Positions 771-12,610 of a DNA stretch of 64,000 nucleotides are shown one piece after another (the first letter of the stretch is position 1; each line of letters starts with the position of its first letter). The stretch is taken from positions 2,170,001 to 2,234,000 of the forward strand of contig JAMWBK010000005.1 of assembly GCA_029953675.1 (NCBI GenBank), read 5' to 3'. This DNA is from Rhodosorus marinus CCMP1338. Taxonomy: Eukaryota > Plantae > Rhodophyta. The translations under genes and the position numbers were made by a program. The notes beneath the pieces were generated by a model. It was given only the letters and a program-made list of their open reading frames with translations. It did no database searches and was not told the origin of the DNA.

Positions 771-3700
771 ATGTCGGTTTTTAGTCAGCGGGAGAAACAG
801 GTAGAGGAGTTACACCAAGCGGTCGTGCAAGTTGAGGCGAGCGTGAAGGTTCAAGATGGAGAAACTTCGAAGAAAAGGGTAGATGAGATACATGAGGGTA
901 CTGAAAAGCTAAAAATGGCCGTTACCGGATACCTGAAGAAAGTTGCTGTGGGGAAAAGTGACCCGAACAAGAAGATCTACGGATCGGTAATGGAGGACAG
1001 GATCGAGAAAATGGACAAGTCACTAAAAGACTTGGATGAAAAGCTTCTGACCGTCAAAGAGGATTTGCAGGTTGTTCTTGAGCGAGAGGCAGTGGAGAAG
1101 GCGAAGCTTGAGAAGGAGGAGAACGAACGAAGGATCAGGCGGGAGGACGAAGAGAAAAAGAGGCGGGAGCAGGAGGAACTCGCTGAACAGAAGAGGAAGG
1201 CCGAAGAGGAGGAAAGGGTCCGCATAGAGTCTGAGAAGAAGCAGCTTGCCTTAGGTGAGCTGAAGTGCGAATGATTCTGACCTGCACTGAGCTTACTGGT
1301 ACAAGACGCTTACCCGATTACTGAACATTTCCTCTGCTTTTTCCTTCCCTGGTACTACTTGGGCTTTTACCAACAGAAGCAAAACAGAAAGCTAAGAAGG
1401 AGAAGGAGAAGAGAAAGCTGGAGGAGTGTGCGAAGGACACGCTGGAAGCGGACAAAGGAAAACCCGAAGGAAATTCTGTACAATCCATGATCAAGCTTAA
1501 AATTTCCGGCTATGCAGGAGAAGCCGTTCTCAGCGCTGACTATGGGCCAGTACCCACCACGTGTAACGTGCTCTCGGTAAAGGAGGCGATCCTAAATAGT
1601 GGAGTCCCGTTGTGGGGCCCGGTTGAAACCCAGAGGCTGATCTACAAGGGCCATTTCCTGGAAAACGATCGATCGCTGGAGTCCTATGGCTTGTCTGGTG
1701 AGGATACACTCTATTTCGTGGTATGTCAAAAAATTTGGATCACCGCTTAGCCCGGCACCGAGAGCTGGTTCCATGGGACTGGAAGGCCGAGGTGCCCTAA
1801 CATTGCTGTTCTCCTCCTATGAGATAGAAACTTCCCGACGGTTACGTTGCGTCTGAATCTAAAACCGCCCCGAAACCGATGGAGGATGTTGTGCAAGGAT
1901 CCGAGGAAGTTGTCTCTACGAAAGCGCCCGAGGTTTGATCGCCCGCCCTGCCCAGGTGTTCGCGGTCAATCGGCAGGCACCTGCTAGACTGTGTGCGTCT
2001 TAAAAAAAAAAGAGCTAACGTCGCTTTATTTCTGTTACAGGGAATGATTCGCGTCTCACTCAAGAACCGATCATCAACGGTTTCGTATTCCGTGGAGCCA
2101 AGTTGGACTGTGGCAAAAGTGAAGGAGCTTGTACACGAAAAAGAGGGCTCGAATCCAGATGATTTGTCCTTGGTTTTCCAAGGAAGAGTTCTCAAGAATG
2201 GGGACGTGCTAGAGTCGTCCGGTATCAAAGACGAAAGTGTGATTTATTCCATGGACAAGAAGCGTAAGTCTCTTGCTACACACATCTACCAGATGGCTAT
2301 CCGAGAAGTGATTGGGGAAAATTAACGGGGTTTAACTGGGAGTTTGCTTCTCACGAAAGGGACCTCGGAGACAGCAAACGCGTCCGCAGTACCAATGGAC
2401 ACTGACACCACTAGCAAGAGCACTGCGCCGATCTCGAGTTCAGGTGCTGTGCAAAGCGCTCCAGCGAGTAGTGCGCCTGCTGCGCCGTCAATACGGAGAG
2501 TCCCTCCACCAAGCGGGACCATTCATGAGGTCACAAGTGGCCGCGAAGAATTTGACGAAATCTTGAAGGATTGCGGCCCAACGAGACTTTGCCTCGTTGA
2601 CTTCAACGCTTCCTGGTGTGGTCCGTGCAGAGCAATAGGTAACCAGATGAACAATTTAGGATTTGGAGTGTACTGGAGGTTGATCATTGAGTACTAATCG
2701 CTCCGGCCTTGCTCATGACTATTATCTAGCCCCTAAGCTGCAAAGACTAGCTCAGGAGAACCCGGATATTTCGTTCGTCGGCATTGACTCTGAGGCGTCA
2801 GCTCAAAACATGTCTTTGTTCAGGGACCTTCAAATCACTTCAATGCCAACCTTTTGGTTTTATGTAAACGGGCGACAGATTATGTCCGTTGTCGGTGCTC
2901 GCGAGGCATCACTTGTGCAGGGTGAGTACAAAACGCGTGATCCTTGCTTAGTATTGAAGAGCTCCTGTCGTTTTCACCGGTTTTAGTTGCTTAGGAGTTC
3001 TTTTCACGATTTCACAGGAATTCAACAATACAGGCAGGCCAGTGGTGTTCCGGCTCCTCCTGCTGCTTCTTCTGCTTCTTCTGCTTCTTCCGCTCCTCCT
3101 AGCATGACCGTAACCGTGATGGCGTCACTGCAGAAGCTCAAATCATCATGCTCGGAGGCTGACTTTATCACGGCCGTGAGGACAATTTCGACTTACCTCT
3201 CAAAGATTGTCACGAACCAGGAGAATGAAAAGTAAGCGCCAACTAGTACAGCCCTGTTGTTTCTCATTGCTCAGTGTTCATTGCTTTTGGGGATTGTACA
3301 ACACAAGGTTTCGAAAGATTCGAATTAAGAATCCTGCCTTCGAGGCACGGGTCAACCGACATCCGGGAGGAATAGACTGCCTTCTTGCCTTCGGATTTAA
3401 AAGAGAAACTGCTGACGGCGAGGAGTACCTGATTATGAGCGAGGCAGACGCGAAGAGGGGCGAATTGAGGCAAGTTAATGGAGACCTGCAGGCCGCGTTT
3501 CAGCCAGGTAAGACTATCTGGACCCCCTGGGAGAGCATTAGAAGGCAGTTTTTTCTCCTTTCGTGGATGGATGGATGGATACTCTTAGGCTGGTTGATGA
3601 GCTAACCTGGAATTTATGATTATCCTCAGTTCTGTCAACTAGCGCAGGTGCGAATTCGAGCACAACAGGCTCTGTCCTCGTCCCTTCGCAGGAAGCCCCA

Positions 3701-3829
3701 GCGGCAAGTGAAAACAACCAAAGCAACTCCGAGGAAGATGCGCAGAGGCTGCTTGAAGAAGCGATCAGGCTTTCCCTTCAGGAAGACGAGGAGAGAGAAA
3801 ATACCAGGGACGGAGGGGGCTCATCATAG
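771..3829 (+). CDS. Multidomain protein: coiled coil - UBL - UBL - thioredoxin (WCGPC) - PUB - UIM-like; 9 exons, about 740 aa
   Basis: Hand-spliced exons 771-1254, 1377-1720, 1828-1932, 2041-2263, 2360-2638, 2730-2921, 3018-3231, 3308-3507, 3648-3829. All introns are GT-AG and phase-consistent, total 2223 nt (741 codons). UBL motifs QRLIYKGHFLENDRSLESYGL and LSLVFQGRVLKNGDVLESSGI; TRX VDFNASWCGPCRAIAPKL; PUB KFRKIRIKNPAFEARV...CLLAFGF; UIM-like LLEEAIRLSLQE. Confidence 0.85.
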
Positions 3830-4933
3830 GAAGAGATTGAGGAACATGGACTGCTACCTTGGAACTTAGCTCCTATGCAAATGGGCTCCCGTGCTAAAAT
3901 ATTACCTGGAACTTTGTTCTGATGTCATCGGCTCCATGTTATAAAAAGCGGTCATGTACAAGTGTTTTGGACTCCAACTTGCAATCCTCCATAGTCGATG
4001 ACAGACGGGTGAGGCGCTCCTCCTCACCATGAGGAGTAGCCTGGGAGACGACAGGAACCCGAGGCAACAGGGCAGCCTGGATACCTTGCTTTGTCAGTTG
4101 AGAATGAACCCAATGTACGAATCCTGCAAGATTGCTCGTTCTCCATAGCGACAACGTCGCCGAGCCCTTACGGACTATGCGATATTCTGAGATCAGCGGT
4201 TCTTTGACCTCTGGAACTCCTTCTTCCCAGGAGAAACAGAATAATCATGGCTGTACACAGGTCCAGAAAAGTTTTCATTGTCGAGGCTACCATGCTAGCA
4301 ACAACCCCGCCCCCTCCCCCCACCCATCGCCTACCTATGGCGGAGTTTTTGACAGAATAGCTTTGTGTATATTATTTATTAGTTATTTCTAGATGTAATA
4401 TCAGTTTCTTTAAAGCGAATTGAACGGAATATTTTTGTTTATTTGTAATATTTAGATGAAGCCATACAATACGGTTAAAATATTATTCTATTTCATACAT
4501 TAAAATTCGAATATTTTAAACGTATTTTTGAGTTCGATTTTTGCTTACGATTTGATCGCCAAATGCTATGTTGTTGTAGAATGCGAAAGGGATGAAAGGA
4601 CAGAAACGGTCGGGAAAAAATAGATCCAGCCGATGCGCCTTCACGATTTTCCCACATAGCAAGCCTTTGCCTTCAACGGGTATACTTCTCGAAATCCTGC
4701 AACCACAACAGAAATTCGGAAATGAGGACGAGCGCACTGGACTTGGTCTTTCCTATAGTTCTCGATCGACTTGACTCTCGATGGACAAACTATGGACCAA
4801 TGACGTACTAATGGGTTTGCATCGACACTCTCATTTCATGCTCCTTCCTCCTCCGGTTTCAGGTTTTGGTCGTCGAGGGTATCGACGTTGGCGGAAGTGA
4901 TGGAATTTGAAATGTCCTGATCTTTGGTTTGGG

Positions 4934-5728
4934 ATGTTGAAGAGGGTTGCTGCGAGGGTTGCTGAAGTGTATCGTGACGCGACTGGACTGCATCTGGTAG
5001 AGCTGAGTCACAATGAAGTTGCAGCGGCTAGGAAGCGACTTGGTGTTGCAAGAATTCGGTCGTCTGAGGTGAGGGCAAAGGTGGCAGATGCTCGATCTGA
5101 AGTTCAGGTAGTCCGATCCCAGGCGGAATCGATCGATCGGATTGATCCGAGGTTTCCCGCGCTTATTCAGAAGGAGCACGAGGCCCTTAAATTAGCGGCA
5201 GATGTTGAGCGCCAGGCCTCGGAGTGCGAGGAGCTGGAGAAGATCGAGTTCGAAAGGCTCTCTAGCGCGCTCGAACTCTCACACGCTCAGGAACGGGACT
5301 ACGCAGAGAGGACCAAATGGTACTCCGTTATTTCATCTGCCGCAGGTGCCGTCCTTGGTTTGCTCGGTTCCTCTCTTGTCGCGAGGTCCAGAAATCAAAG
5401 TGTGGAAAAGCTGGCCGACTCTCAAAGCCAGAAACTAATCAGCATCCTTGACCCCTCTTTACGTCGTCTGGAGAATGACATCCGTTCCCTCACGCAACGG
5501 GGAAGCCAGAATGAAGACGAACACGGATCCGAAGACGGGGAAGATGAACATACCCCTGAGCTCGGCGTTGAAACCTCGCCGCCAGAGTCTCCGTCGCAGG
5601 ATCCTGATCTCACCATCGCTCTTGAGGAGCTGGAACACAGAGTGAGAGAACTTCAGTTCATCATAGGAGGTACTACAGCTCTACTGATGTCCATCACGAT
5701 CATCTTGTCCGTCAATGGAAGTCGTTAG
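4934..5728 (+). CDS. CCDC51/MITOK (She9/Mdm33-related) mitochondrial coiled-coil membrane protein
   Basis: Intronless ORF with ATG at 4934. Long coiled coil, then LELSHAQERDYAERTKWYSVISSAAGAVLGLLGS, which resembles the animal CCDC51 signature (ESHEKERxRAERTKxWSxIGSVLGALIGV). A second hydrophobic segment lies at the C-terminus. Confidence 0.75.
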   Translation: MLKRVAARVAEVYRDATGLHLVELSHNEVAAARKRLGVARIRSSEVRAKVADARSEVQVVRSQAESIDRIDPRFPALIQKEHEALKLAADVERQASECEELEKIEFERLSSALELSHAQERDYAERTKWYSVISSAAGAVLGLLGSSLVARSRNQSVEKLADSQSQKLISILDPSLRRLENDIRSLTQRGSQNEDEHGSEDGEDEHTPELGVETSPPESPSQDPDLTIALEELEHRVRELQFIIGGTTALLMSITIILSVNGSR

Positions 5729-6229: not shown

Positions 6230-7177
6230 TCAACACTTTTGCGGAAGCCCCACGGTTGTTTTCTCTTCCTTCATCGGCCGCTTCGTTGGAGGGGCGATGG
6301 TATCTTGTCGGTTCTTCGAGTTAGCTTCAGGGTCATCGTCTTTTCGTTTTATACCCTTTTGCCTCACAAACGTTGAGTACTCGCTAATCTGGCGGCGAAT
6401 AGTTGTGTTAAATCGATTCTTCACGGAGTTATCCGTTCGACCTTTCAGTCGCTTAGCAATCTCGGACCACTTATTTCCGATCTCGTGGTGTGCCTCCATA
6501 ATTATCTGGTCCTCTTCCAGCGTCCATTGCCTCTTTGAGAGGTCCGGGTTGAGATGGTTTAGCCATCTTTCTCTAGATTGCTTTCCAGTCCGACCGTTGA
6601 TGAAGCTCGCAATTGCGGTCCATCGCCTTGGACCAAACTTCTTCACAAGTTCACACAAAAGCTTGTCTTCTTCCGCCCTCCAGGGTCCCTTCACTCTGGT
6701 CTCCGTGGGGCTCAAAGGAGCAAAACTCTCAGACTCGTTCGAGTGAGCCTCCTCTACTGCCTGGCACAACAGGTTCAAGCCTGGGTTTACTGGGCGCACT
6801 AGATTCGGCGCAGAAAAGTCGGAATGGCCACTACTGCAGAGACTCAGCACTGGTGAACCCTTGCTGCCCATTGTCGTCGGTAAGGGTTGTACTCGCTGCA
6901 TGACCGGAGACTGCTCAGGGCCGCCGTTGCCGCGATGTCGCGCTTGTTGCACTTGCTGGAAAGGCACGTGGTAGTAGCCATTCTGCGGACTCTCCCGGAC
7001 AACTTGGCGGGGACACGAAACGCATGGGTAAGAGGACATCACTGGACTCATCATTGGGAGCTCATGCCTAGCATGCGGCAGGTGATTTGCAGGCGGAAGT
7101 ATGGTTGTCGCAGGGCCCCGCCGAAGAGGGAAACCCGGGCTGAACTCCGAGCGAGCCCAGTTCTCCTCTACATACAT
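6230..7177 (-). CDS. Two-repeat (R2R3-type) MYB transcription factor
   Basis: Repeats KGPWRAEEDKLLCELVKKFGPRRWTAIASFINGRTGKQSRERWLNHLNP and KRQWTLEEDQIIMEAHHEIGNKWSEIAKRLKGRTDNSVKNRF. First in-frame ATG at 7177; no intron needed. Confidence 0.92.
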   Translation of the reverse strand: MYVEENWARSEFSPGFPLRRGPATTILPPANHLPHARHELPMMSPVMSSYPCVSCPRQVVRESPQNGYYHVPFQQVQQARHRGNGGPEQSPVMQRVQPLPTTMGSKGSPVLSLCSSGHSDFSAPNLVRPVNPGLNLLCQAVEEAHSNESESFAPLSPTETRVKGPWRAEEDKLLCELVKKFGPRRWTAIASFINGRTGKQSRERWLNHLNPDLSKRQWTLEEDQIIMEAHHEIGNKWSEIAKRLKGRTDNSVKNRFNTTIRRQISEYSTFVRQKGIKRKDDDPEANSKNRQDTIAPPTKRPMKEEKTTVGLPQKC

Positions 7178-8740: not shown

Positions 8741-10850
8741 TCATCGGCTTATTTGTACGCGGTTCGTGGATCCTGAGAACACGAAATCCCCACCCTGTCC
8801 TGTTTTTTTTAGCTTTTTGCGGGTTTCGATACCCCCCCCCGCCCAAGACAATTGAGTTGGCTGGAATTCTCCATCTTCAAGATACTTTTGCTCAAAAACA
8901 TTCACATTTCTAGACTTGGCCGATGTCAACGCATGCCGCGAACTAGCATGGAGGCCTTCCATTCGAAGAACCCCGAAAACGTCTAGTTTCCAGGCAGCCT
9001 TTGCAAGAGGCACTTTTGGACAAATGAGGAACAACAGCCATTATTGATCGTCTAGGGTCTCAACGCCTTACTAAGCCATTCTCCACAACAACGACGGAGA
9101 AAGTGAAGGGGGGGGGGAGGCAACTTCGACACCAAGACCAAAATGGCCCGTGCAACTGTTTTTGGTAAGCACGGAACTGTTTGGTCGCTAATGACGGAGG
9201 GGCCAGTGGAAACGCATTGTCTATGATCCTCCAGTCCGCGCTAGAGGTATTTCGTCTTTGATTAATAATTTTCTCACCGGACAATATCGCAATTGTGATT
9301 GGCGTGTTTGTCACGGAGAATTTGCGTCTATAAGATTAAATATGAAAGTTTCTACAATGATCTGCCCCCAATCCCAATCCAGAAGAGTAAAAGGCCTATC
9401 TCTTCCAGCAGATTTCCTTGTCGCTGATACTAGGCTAAAAAGAATATGGAGCTGCATTTTCGATTCGCGGTGTACAGCTAGCAAGAGAGCCTCAAGAAAT
9501 CTGCCTTCCGACTCGAACCGACTATAGTAAGAAAAAAGAAAGAGTCCGTTTGCAACTTTGTTTTGAAAACTAGTTGGGCGCGGCTGGTGGGCGCTCACTG
9601 GAGATGTTTTCGTCGTATTGTATTGTTTCCCTATCTTTCCTTGTTTTTGCTTTCGTGCAAATCGTTTCTCGGTGCAGTTGGGCTACTACCATAGACGCCC
9701 TGATAAAAGGATTGGGGAATGGATTAATGGCTTCCTGGACGACCTTGTAATTGTATGGGAGGAATTTTGATGCGGTGGAACCGATCAAAACTCCTAGTGG
9801 CTTTGATTTTGCCACCATCCAGCTAGTCTTTTTGATATCTTCGTTCAGCAGCTGATCGACAAAGTACCCTCTTACTGCAAGCTTTCAAAGGTGTGCAAAA
9901 AAAGGAAGCTCTCCTTATCATGAGCGCGCCTAGAGCGCTATCTTCAGTGTCGAGTCGCCCAGCGATGGAGTGCAAGATGCCATTTCTGATCTCCAGCGCA
10001 TCGATATCGGTGGCATCCGAGTCAGTCTTTGTACTAGCTGTCCCATTGCAGGGATATTGTCTAACACCCCCATGTCATCTGTGCTGATGGGCCAGAGATC
10101 GGGCTTCCTCGATGCGAGAGCGATCACTTAGGCAATAGCTCAGGGAATACAAAACACAAACTTCCAGCACCCGGTGTTTGCTGTTTGCACAAGCCATTGC
10201 CACTTGGCACTATGGAGTTTGGGCTGTAGCAGAGGATGCTGAGAGGAGCCATCTTAGTTCCTACCTCCTTGGATTCCTGAAAAAACCCGATTAATTGCAT
10301 GAGGCGTAGCTCCAAGTTAAGTTGGATTTTGACAGGGAGAACCGAAGCAGTGCGGTGAGTAAAGGTATGACCGGACCTAGTTCCCGTCGGAAACGATTGA
10401 AATAAACAATTTTACTCGGAAGAGACTCCAGAGTGTGACCAGGGCCAAAGCCTCAGATATACCTCTTCCAAGTCATGCTTGAATTCTTTCAAAGTAGCCA
10501 GGCTTTGATTTGAGTCCTGCTCAATCCCGACAGATCAAGTGCAGCCGCACACTTCCCGCAATGACTTTGATCTAAGGTCAGGTCACAAGTACCTGGCTGT
10601 CACAATCACCAGAATGCAGGGGATCCATCCGTCCCACCAATACACTAAATGGGCGCACTCCAGAGACCGGAATGTTGGCGTTGGGATCATTTCAACCCTT
10701 GGCGACGTCAAAGCAGGAGAGCTCTACCCCGAACCTTCCTGAACTTCGAACTAGCTTCGTACTCTAGGTCTGAGCCTGTGAAGTTCTTTTCCAGCTGCGA
10801 AAAAGTCTCGTTTCTTAACCAGACCTCTTCAAGCCTTCTACGACCAACAA
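8741..10850 (-). CDS. Possible multi-exon hypothetical gene; structure unresolved
   Basis: A chain of minus-strand, protein-like open segments (e.g. TKTDSDATDIDALEIRNGILHSIAGRLD; GYFVDQLLNEDIKKTSWMVAKSKPLGVLIG; RFLEALLLAVHRESKMQLHILFSLV), some with GT/AG borders. I could not build a phase-consistent model or recognise a family. Confidence 0.3.
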
Positions 10851-11827: not shown

Positions 11828-12610
11828 ATGATTATCTACAAGGATCGTTTTACGGGTGAGCGGTTTTGTTTGTTCATTATGTTTTGTCGTTTCCATAGGG
11901 GGCAGGCTGTTGTGTTCTGGTTTCTGAAGACGTTTTCTTCTTTTCTTTTAGGAGATGAGGTTCTCTCTGATGCAATGAAGCAGGTACGCGTTGAGGAGGA
12001 TGGACTTATCCTCGTCAGTGAATCCTACAATGTGAGCAAGGGCGGTGAGGACTTTGGGTTCGAGAACAACGACGAGGAGGGTGGTGATCTTGCGGATGCG
12101 GTAAGTCGCTTTGCTAACTTCTCTGATTGTCTTGAAGTCGTCGATAGTGGCTGACGTGTTGTATCGAAATTCTCACTTAAATGAACCAAAGGCCGAACAA
12201 GTGAACATTGTCGTAGACAGCTTCCAGCTCGTACAGACGTCCATGGATAAGAAGTCCTTCCAGGGGTATATCAAGATCTATCTTAAGAAGGTCAAGGCCG
12301 AGCTTGAGAAGAGCAATCCGGATCGTGTAGAGCCATTCATGACCGGGATGAAGGCGTGGGTGCCCAAGATGCTCAAAGAGTTCTCCGAGTATGATTTGTA
12401 AGTCTATTCCAACTGCGATTCTGGGCTAGATCCCCCTCTTCATTGGATTTCGGCATATACTGAAAGAACTGAAATGCTTCACGCCTGTGCAGCTACATGG
12501 GGCGCAGCTGCGACGGTGAGGCTGGATACGTCTACGGAAAGTTCGGGGAAGGTGCCTCCTACCCCACTTTCTACATCATCAAGGACGGTTTGTCGGAAGA
12601 GAAGGTCTAA
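11828..12610 (+). CDS. TCTP: Translationally controlled tumour protein (TCTP), 4 exons
   Basis: Spliced N-terminus MIIYKDRFTGDEVLSD; VNIVVDSFQLVQTSMDKKSFQGYIKIYLKKVKAEL; C-terminus PTFYIIKDGLSEEKV*. Three GT-AG introns. Confidence 0.95.

Follow-up and report, generated by a model that had tools for sequence, protein, structure and literature searches.

What is encoded at a locus that seems to join a thioredoxin to ubiquitin-like modules and a PUB domain, and is it made as a single polypeptide? The question arises at positions 771-3829 of a 64,000-nucleotide (nt) stretch of the genome of the red alga Rhodosorus marinus (GCA_029953675.1, contig JAMWBK010000005.1), which we call the window and whose numbering is used throughout. 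A preliminary description of this DNA had proposed a fusion of a coiled coil, two ubiquitin-like domains (UBLs), a thioredoxin (TRX), a PUB domain and a ubiquitin-interacting motif (UIM), acting as a redox-coupled adaptor between p97/Cdc48 and the proteasome. We found that positions 771-3829 are one real gene of nine exons, encoding a soluble protein of 746 amino acids (aa). Its domain order is a helical N-terminal domain (NTD), an ER/K helix, two UBLs in tandem, a thioredoxin with a WCGPC active site, a PUB domain and a UIM-like helix. The gene belongs to a conserved family without assigned function, in which it stands out as a lineage variant that carries a second UBL and lacks the STI1-like region.

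A single nine-exon gene

The bacterial-style list of open reading frames (ORFs) splits this locus into fragments, as had been noticed from the start. Joining nine exons, with each intron running from GT to AG, gives instead an open coding sequence (CDS) of 2241 nt, and the product is close to the length of about 740 aa expected beforehand. It is identical (100% identity over 100% of the length) to the NCBI entry 'hypothetical protein NDN08_001634' [Rhodosorus marinus], and the annotated gene of the assembly has the same extent of 3059 bases, so the nine-exon, single-polypeptide model is borne out. The ATG at 771 is the first in the ORF, and homologues share the MS[LVI]F start of the Rhodosorus protein in alignments. 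The gene is laid out on the + strand as follows.

771..3829 (+): whole CDS, 9 exons, 746 aa; spliced ORF open, NCBI protein identical, annotated extent equal
771-1254, 1377-1720, 1828-1932, 2041-2263 and 2360-2638 (+): exons 1-5
2730-2921, 3018-3231, 3308-3507 and 3630-3829 (+): exons 6-9
3827-3829 (+): stop codon TAG

The long protein might be an annotation artefact that fuses neighbouring genes, and two observations lean that way: the fragmented ORF list, and the fact that no single Rhodosorus transcript spans all eight junctions. A related strain, however, offers transcriptome-derived proteins with 86-88% identity; they show no indels across the junctions, and these overlapping products jointly cover all eight of them (P0002 junctions 1-6, P0003 junctions 4-8, P0164 junctions 6-8). 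From another, related species, P0030 is a complete transcript product of 746 aa, 40% identical and with equal domain order. In red seaweeds, which are intron-poor, the orthologues are single uninterrupted ORFs, such as P0005 with 2412 nt within a 27-kb contig. The base composition agrees: AT-poor coding sequence is flanked by AT-rich spacers at 201-800 and 4201-4800, and the AT profile of the locus showed no AT-rich intergenic break inside 771-3829. Because of the transcript-derived junction coverage, P0030 and the intronless seaweed orthologues, we reject the gene-fusion artefact as very unlikely, to the point of being negligible.

Domains of the protein

The domains, in order along the + strand, are these.

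771..1082 (+): conserved N-terminal domain, aa 1-~104; 20-member alignment, AlphaFold2 pLDDT (predicted local distance difference test) 95.5
1083..1432 (+), spanning intron 1: ER/K-rich long helix, aa ~105-180; predicted helix and composition
1487..1720 (+): UBL1, aa ~199-276; Pfam ubiquitin 5.5e-08 (32.9 bits, cut-off 25.4)
2041..2263 (+): UBL2, aa 312-385; best Pfam ubiquitin stretch aa 317-382, aligns to ubiquitin in the Protein Data Bank (PDB)
2521..3034 (+), spanning introns 5 and 6: thioredoxin domain, aa ~440-548; Pfam PF00085 and Foldseek
2614-2628 (+): WCGPC codons
3104..3637 (+), spanning introns 7 and 8: PUB domain, aa ~572-683; Pfam PF09409
3731..3787 (+): UIM-like helix EEDAQRLLEEAIRLSLQED, aa 715-733; core pattern, C-terminus conserved across the family

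The thioredoxin, previously described as intact, is confirmed as such. Pfam Thioredoxin (PF00085) matches aa 447-545 with 2.8e-20 and 72.7 bits (cut-off 23.5), the domain is modelled by AlphaFold2 with pLDDT ~90, and Foldseek superposes it on human and yeast thioredoxins with template modelling (TM) scores of 0.93-0.95 (human 0.95) and root-mean-square deviations of 1.0-1.4 Å. The segment LVDFNASWCGPCR at aa 464-476 contains WCGPC and the buried Asp of VDF, and SMPTF at aa 516-520 contains the cis-Pro. These catalytic columns are invariant in the family alignment, and CGPC is retained in every complete family member. From its sequence, the domain looks active and is predicted to be redox-competent. 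Loss of the CxxC motif in some family members was considered and rejected, since the exceptions turned out to be TCGPC or N-terminally truncated fragments. In the subgroup P0042, P0048, P0050 and P0083, TCGPC replaces WCGPC; the P0048 cluster includes a Micromonas pusilla protein.

The PUB domain is matched by Pfam PF09409 over aa 591-663 at 9.7e-19 and 67.5 bits (cut-off 34.3), with an AlphaFold2 pLDDT of ~90. The best structural relative by alignment is the PUB domain of PNGase (2HPJ/2HPL, 1.6e-08), followed by that of UBXD1 (6SAP, 6.3e-08).

Both predicted UBLs were recovered, as two stretches of a Pfam ubiquitin (PF00240) match with 2.9e-23 and 81.8 bits. UBL2 (pLDDT ~90) is orthologous to the single UBL of the family. 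UBL1, modelled with moderate confidence (pLDDT 62-78), is the extra one, a second UBL being present only in Rhodosorus and the P0030 group in the architecture census. Foldseek finds the tandem pair to resemble linear di-ubiquitin and ISG15. A C-terminal Gly-Gly is absent from both (UBL1 ends ...LYFVKLPDGY and UBL2 ...VIYSMDKKR), and for this reason their sequences mark them as built-in domains and not conjugatable modifiers.

At the C-terminus, the core LEEAIRLSLQE follows the UIM pattern, with an acidic run and then hydrophobic-x-x-Ala-x-x-x-Ser-x-x-acidic (SEEDAQRL-L-EE-A-IRL-S-LQ-E, aa 714-732). Its A725 and S729 do not vary among the aligned family members, and aa 714-740 are predicted as helix by AlphaFold2. 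The orthologous motif of relatives scores 14.8-20.3 bits against Pfam UIM, always below the cut-off of 21. Together with the lack of a Pfam call in Rhodosorus, discussed below, this is the reason why we label the motif, proposed earlier as a UIM, UIM-like only.

The N-terminal region had been called a coiled coil. Its helical nature was confirmed and its coiled-coil identity was not, as it comprises a three-helix N-terminal domain and then an ER/K-rich helix. AlphaFold2 (pLDDT 95.5) predicts the first part as a bundle of three antiparallel helices, the last of which continues onward, so that aa 72-180 form a single continuous helix. Twenty aligned family members share a DPNK[KR]IYG loop as well as the MS[LVI]F start; G71 occurs in all of them, and A58, P65, Y70 and M74 in nearly all. 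Pfam gave no recurrent family for these 20 members, a profile search against PDB sequences returned only designed helical bundles (E >= 0.0016), and the best Foldseek match in the PDB had a non-significant E of 0.087. The structural matches were SNARE Habc-like, CorA, spectrin and one BAG-complex chain; given that none was significant, we rejected naming the domain Habc or BAG. In the following stretch, aa 105-180 are 68% E/K/R/D and 12% hydrophobic by manual count, and the equivalent region of homologues is equally charged. On this charged composition, the stretch is likely to be an ER/K single alpha-helix that acts as a spacer, which replaces the classical heptad coiled coil.

A family shared by red and green algae and an ancyromonad

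The preliminary description did not recognise this architecture among characterised proteins. In agreement, our literature search yielded no characterisation of the full architecture. The orphan status that this implied is not sustained: the architecture search located the family across red algae, green algae and the ancyromonad Fabomonas, and its TRX-PUB core is published as sPUB. A full HMMER search with a TRX-PUB profile against 1.84 billion cluster representatives gave ~60 clusters (50% identity) that hold a contiguous TRX-PUB module. Word-index profile searches, with a 28-sequence TRX-PUB profile or with PUB only, added almost nothing new, as plain thioredoxins swamped the list or few words were shared; the breadth of the family thus rests on the full HMMER search and on cluster look-ups. 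Thioredoxin and PUB are above the Pfam threshold in all of the following named members.

Red algae: Porphyridium purpureum KAA8493058.1, 'Thioredoxin H2-1', 869 aa
Red algae: P. aerugineum (Porphyridium) and Timspurckia oligopyrenoides
Red algae: Gracilariopsis chorda PXF47114.1, 783 aa, and Compsopogon caeruleus
Green algae: cluster containing Micromonas pusilla
Green algae: [Myrmecia] bisecta
Green algae: Auxenochlorella, short form
Ancyromonad: Fabomonas tropica

A census with local hidden Markov models showed that the commonest long form is NTD-UBL-TRX-PUB-STI1-like-UIM, with 15 proteins plus partial versions; 44 proteins consist of TRX-PUB only, and others are UBL-TRX-PUB. The double UBL without an STI1-like region is found only in Rhodosorus and the P0030 group. 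In the relatives, the region between PUB and UIM is rich in Met and Gln and gives sub-threshold Pfam matches to STI1-HOP_DP, UBQLN1 and XPC-binding. We also found P0142, a protein of 901 aa from a JGI metagenome, in which thioredoxin and PUB are fused to the transglutaminase core of PNGase and a lectin domain. It is an intermediate between the mammalian PUB-PNGase and the worm thioredoxin-PNGase.

Comparison with known systems

The closest published combination is sPUB, an accessory of the symbiont-specific ERAD-like machinery (SELMA) of the diatom Phaeodactylum tricornutum, which likewise carries TRX and PUB in one polypeptide. It was described in 2011 from the periplastidal compartment, with a presumed redox-regulatory role on sCdc48 (PMC3101018). 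Judged from published descriptions, sPUB differs in having a bipartite plastid-targeting signal and TRX plus PUB only, whereas the Rhodosorus protein adds the N-terminal domain, the ER/K helix, two UBLs and the UIM-like helix. The thioredoxin of sPUB is reported to be nearest to the YbbN type (PMC12412216), while that of Rhodosorus resembles classical cytosolic thioredoxins by PDB alignment and Foldseek. According to the same 2025 study, only stramenopiles and chromerids combine TRX and PUB, and sPUB arose from stramenopile YbbN-like thioredoxins; the proteins from red algae, green algae and Fabomonas contradict this restriction to stramenopiles and chromerids (PMC12412216). The Rhodosorus N-terminus, MSVFSQREKQVEEL..., is hydrophilic, forms helix 1 of the conserved bundle and shows no bipartite periplastidal signal. 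To our knowledge, red algae have no periplastidal compartment.

By function, the nearest working analogies would be PNGase, a PUB-tethered enzyme for Cdc48 clients, and TXNL1, a thioredoxin on the 19S proteasome. TXNL1/TRP32 consists of thioredoxin and PITH and is a redox-active cofactor of the 26S proteasome (PMC12700798, PMC12700817, PMC10570131). The likeness is that an AAA+ unfoldase of the ubiquitin system has an active thioredoxin attached to it, presumably to deal with disulfides of clients. The tether is different, being PITH bound to Rpn2/Rpn10/Rpn11 and not PUB; TXNL1 has neither UBL nor UIM, and Pfam found no PITH (DUF1000) in the Rhodosorus protein. PNGase is like the Rhodosorus protein in that a PUB-tethered enzyme strips an endoplasmic reticulum-derived modification from Cdc48 clients; the best alignment of the Rhodosorus PUB to that of PNGase, the worm PNG-1 thioredoxin and the P0142 fusion belong to the same likeness. 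In Caenorhabditis elegans PNG-1, a thioredoxin domain takes the place of PUB (PMC9102325). NGLY1 is PUB-transglutaminase-PAW and PNG-1 thioredoxin-transglutaminase-PAW, whereas the Rhodosorus protein lacks the transglutaminase core and has the thioredoxin as its enzyme module.

Two further groups share parts of the design. UBXD1/UBXN6 (VIM-PUB-UBX) is also a PUB-containing Cdc48/p97 cofactor, and the source of the pocket comparison given below (PMC6995525); it has no enzyme domain and binds the p97 N-domain via VIM and UBX, for neither of which Pfam gave a match in the Rhodosorus protein. Ubiquilin/Dsk2 and Rad23 (UBL-STI1-UBA) likewise combine an N-terminal UBL with a C-terminal ubiquitin-binding element. 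They differ in using UBA where a UIM-like helix is found here (Pfam finds no UBA in the Rhodosorus protein), in the STI1-like region that Rhodosorus lacks and, for ubiquilins, in having no TRX-PUB core. In addition, among the selenoprotein families of a survey of algal selenoproteomes there is a 'PUB domain-containing protein' (PMC7539508); should it be identical with the TRX-PUB family, it would speak for a catalytic thioredoxin.

A possible role at Cdc48 and the proteasome

On domain identity and conservation, we tentatively take the Rhodosorus protein for a Cdc48/p97-proteasome adaptor that would reduce client disulfides, a reading that we favour at slightly less than even confidence. The PUB domain would tether the protein to the C-terminal ...DDLYx tail of Cdc48, located at the D2 exit side, and clients that are ubiquitinated or unfolded would be bound by the UIM, joined in relatives by the ubiquilin-like STI1 region. 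The thioredoxin, tethered in this way, might then reduce those disulfides of clients that stand in the way of unfolding and degradation, and the UBL or UBLs may dock the complex onto proteasomal ubiquitin receptors. This proposal is strengthened by the conservation of CGPC and of the PUB pocket in ~60 clusters and by the TRX-PUB-PNGase fusion. In this sense, P0142 and worm PNG-1 link the activity of a thioredoxin to the very step at which Cdc48 clients are processed, and TXNL1 shows that the principle of a tethered thioredoxin works at the proteasome.

The p97-tail pocket of PNGase and UBXD1, established by experiment, reads YxxN(x)9Y followed by K/RxxN, which corresponds to Y38, N41, Y51, R55 and N58 of PNGase (PMC6995525). 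Its Asn (PNGase N41, UBXD1 N184) forms a hydrogen bond with the hydroxyl group of the tyrosine in the p97 tail, and in UBXD1 its mutation strongly impairs binding (PMC6995525). We compared the PNGase-equivalent positions of 62 family sequences: N41 is Asn in 59, Y51 is Tyr or Phe in 61, R55 is Arg or Lys in 60, and N58 is Asn in 61 of the 62. Judging by these residues, the family overall looks like a binder of the Cdc48 tail.

The Rhodosorus protein itself fits less well, and several points weigh against its acting as such an adaptor. Lys occupies the N41 position in only the two Rhodosorus sequences of the 62, as Lys605, and independent transcriptome data of the genus confirm this residue.

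3203-3205 (+): codon of Lys605

Nearby, Gln610 stands where 55 of the 62 have Pro. The YxxN(x)9Y core is therefore broken at its Asn (N41 to K605), although Y602 is kept and the change of Y51 to F615 is conservative; in the second part, K/RxxN is present as R619 and N622, and the GF motif is intact. Since the pocket Asn is Lys605, Cdc48 binding is weakened as a prediction for Rhodosorus, and tail binding by this protein is uncertain on its pocket residues; the earlier claim of p97/Cdc48 binding through PUB is strengthened by the pocket of the family and put in doubt by that of Rhodosorus. Other modules add to these reservations. The STI1-like client-binding region is absent from the Rhodosorus protein and present in relatives, according to the census. 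UBL2 has Asn at the position of ubiquitin Leu8 and keeps the Ile44 patch only in part in the PDB ubiquitin alignment. Pfam UIM (PF02809, cut-off 21 bits) matches neither the Rhodosorus C-terminus nor its 23-mer.

These changes may instead fit a proteasome shuttle of the ubiquilin or Rad23 kind that carries oxidised proteins and acts without Cdc48, its PUB pocket having drifted to another partner or to none. Two nearly invariant residues of the pocket or loop have given way to Lys605 and Gln610 in this genus only, the Rhodosorus variant has acquired an extra UBL and shed the STI1-like region, and PUB domains can bind partners other than p97, as in HOIP-OTULIN/SPATA2 and SPATA2-CYLD (PMC6995525). 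However, Y602, F615, R619, N622 and the GF motif remain intact, the PUB domain is still clearly constrained (67.5 bits in Pfam), and the sister variant P0030 keeps the canonical pocket Asn. We consider a Cdc48-independent shuttle distinctly improbable.

Another possibility is that the thioredoxin acts on Cdc48 or its cofactors, keeping putative oxidation-sensitive cysteines of the D2 ring reduced, so that Cdc48 would be redox-regulated. PUB would put the enzyme beside the D2 ring and the C-terminal tail (PMC6995525). Redox regulation of sCdc48 by sPUB was suggested by Moog et al. (PMC3101018), and the short members of the family are TRX-PUB only, without ubiquitin- or client-binding parts. The long form, however, adds UBL, STI1-like and UIM modules that are typical of client shuttles, and the TRX-PUB-PNGase fusion points to client processing. 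Regulation of Cdc48 itself seems unlikely to us. A role of the thioredoxin mainly as a redox-independent holdase, or as a sensor that activates the adaptor under oxidative stress, in place of a client reductase, is more doubtful still. TXNL1 does have a redox-independent chaperone activity besides its reductase activity (PMC10570131), but CGPC, the buried Asp and the cis-Pro are strictly retained across the family. The redox-coupled p97/proteasome adaptor of the preliminary description is kept as the most economical reading, and is tempered by Lys605, the sub-threshold UIM and an architecture that is no orphan.

Intron 7 and neighbouring genes

Retention of one of the eight introns would shorten the protein.

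3232..3307 (+): intron 7; retention gives an immediate stop (AAG|TAA, TAA at 3233-3235) and a product ending within PUB

P0002, an MMETSP transcript product of the related strain, ends ...NQENEK, precisely where retention of intron 7 predicts (3230-3235), and P0173, a relative of P0030, has an insertion at the intron-7 position. The coincidence of both at the same point suggests that retention of intron 7 is recurrent and yields an isoform, NTD-UBL-UBL-TRX, that would have neither a functional PUB nor a UIM.

As for the surroundings, base 1 of the window is base 9231 of a larger locus, L003. Just outside the window, at L003 8634-8867 on the - strand, lies a NEDD8/RUB1-like gene of the ubiquitin family (77 aa, ending ...LRGGH). 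It is head-to-head with the TRX-PUB gene, ~1.1 kb upstream of its start codon, a placement that may be a coincidence or may reflect a shared bidirectional promoter. Downstream, the window contains the following.

4934-5728 (+): downstream neighbour, 264 aa; no Pfam match, charged helical region and hydrophobic C-terminal stretch (...IIGGTTALLMSITIILSV)
6230-7177 (-): two-repeat Myb DNA-binding protein; annotation, converted from L003
10872-10953 (-): tRNA-Ser (anticodon CGA); ARAGORN and Rfam
11828-12610 (+): TCTP homologue; annotation, converted from L003
27086-27275 (+): U1 spliceosomal small nuclear RNA; Rfam, 85 bits against a gathering score of 69.5

The sequence of the 264-aa neighbour suggests a tail-anchored protein.

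Implications

The TRX-PUB core was already known as sPUB, and members of the family are present in databases without a described function. The presence of TRX plus PUB in red algae, green algae and an ancyromonad reopens the origin of the sPUB of SELMA. A more far-reaching scenario, which we regard as rather improbable, is that NTD-UBL-TRX-PUB-STI1-UIM is an ancient eukaryotic cofactor that reduces disulfides at the exit side of Cdc48, as a counterpart of TXNL1, and that its red-algal copy was the progenitor of sPUB. If true, a red-algal progenitor would overturn the view of TRX plus PUB as an innovation of stramenopiles and chromerids.

How disulfide-bonded clients are handled by cytosolic unfoldases is only now being resolved for the proteasome, via the 2025 TXNL1 structures. 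A thioredoxin linked to a domain that binds the Cdc48 tail, to a UBL and to ubiquitin and client binders would make the disulfide question directly testable for Cdc48. In the same direction, the TRX-PUB-PNGase fusion suggests a single processing step in which clients derived from the endoplasmic reticulum are deglycosylated and have their disulfides reduced. Finally, the Asn-to-Lys change in the pocket of the Rhodosorus protein is a natural variant, from which one might learn whether PUB has co-evolved with the Cdc48 tail or has switched to a different partner.

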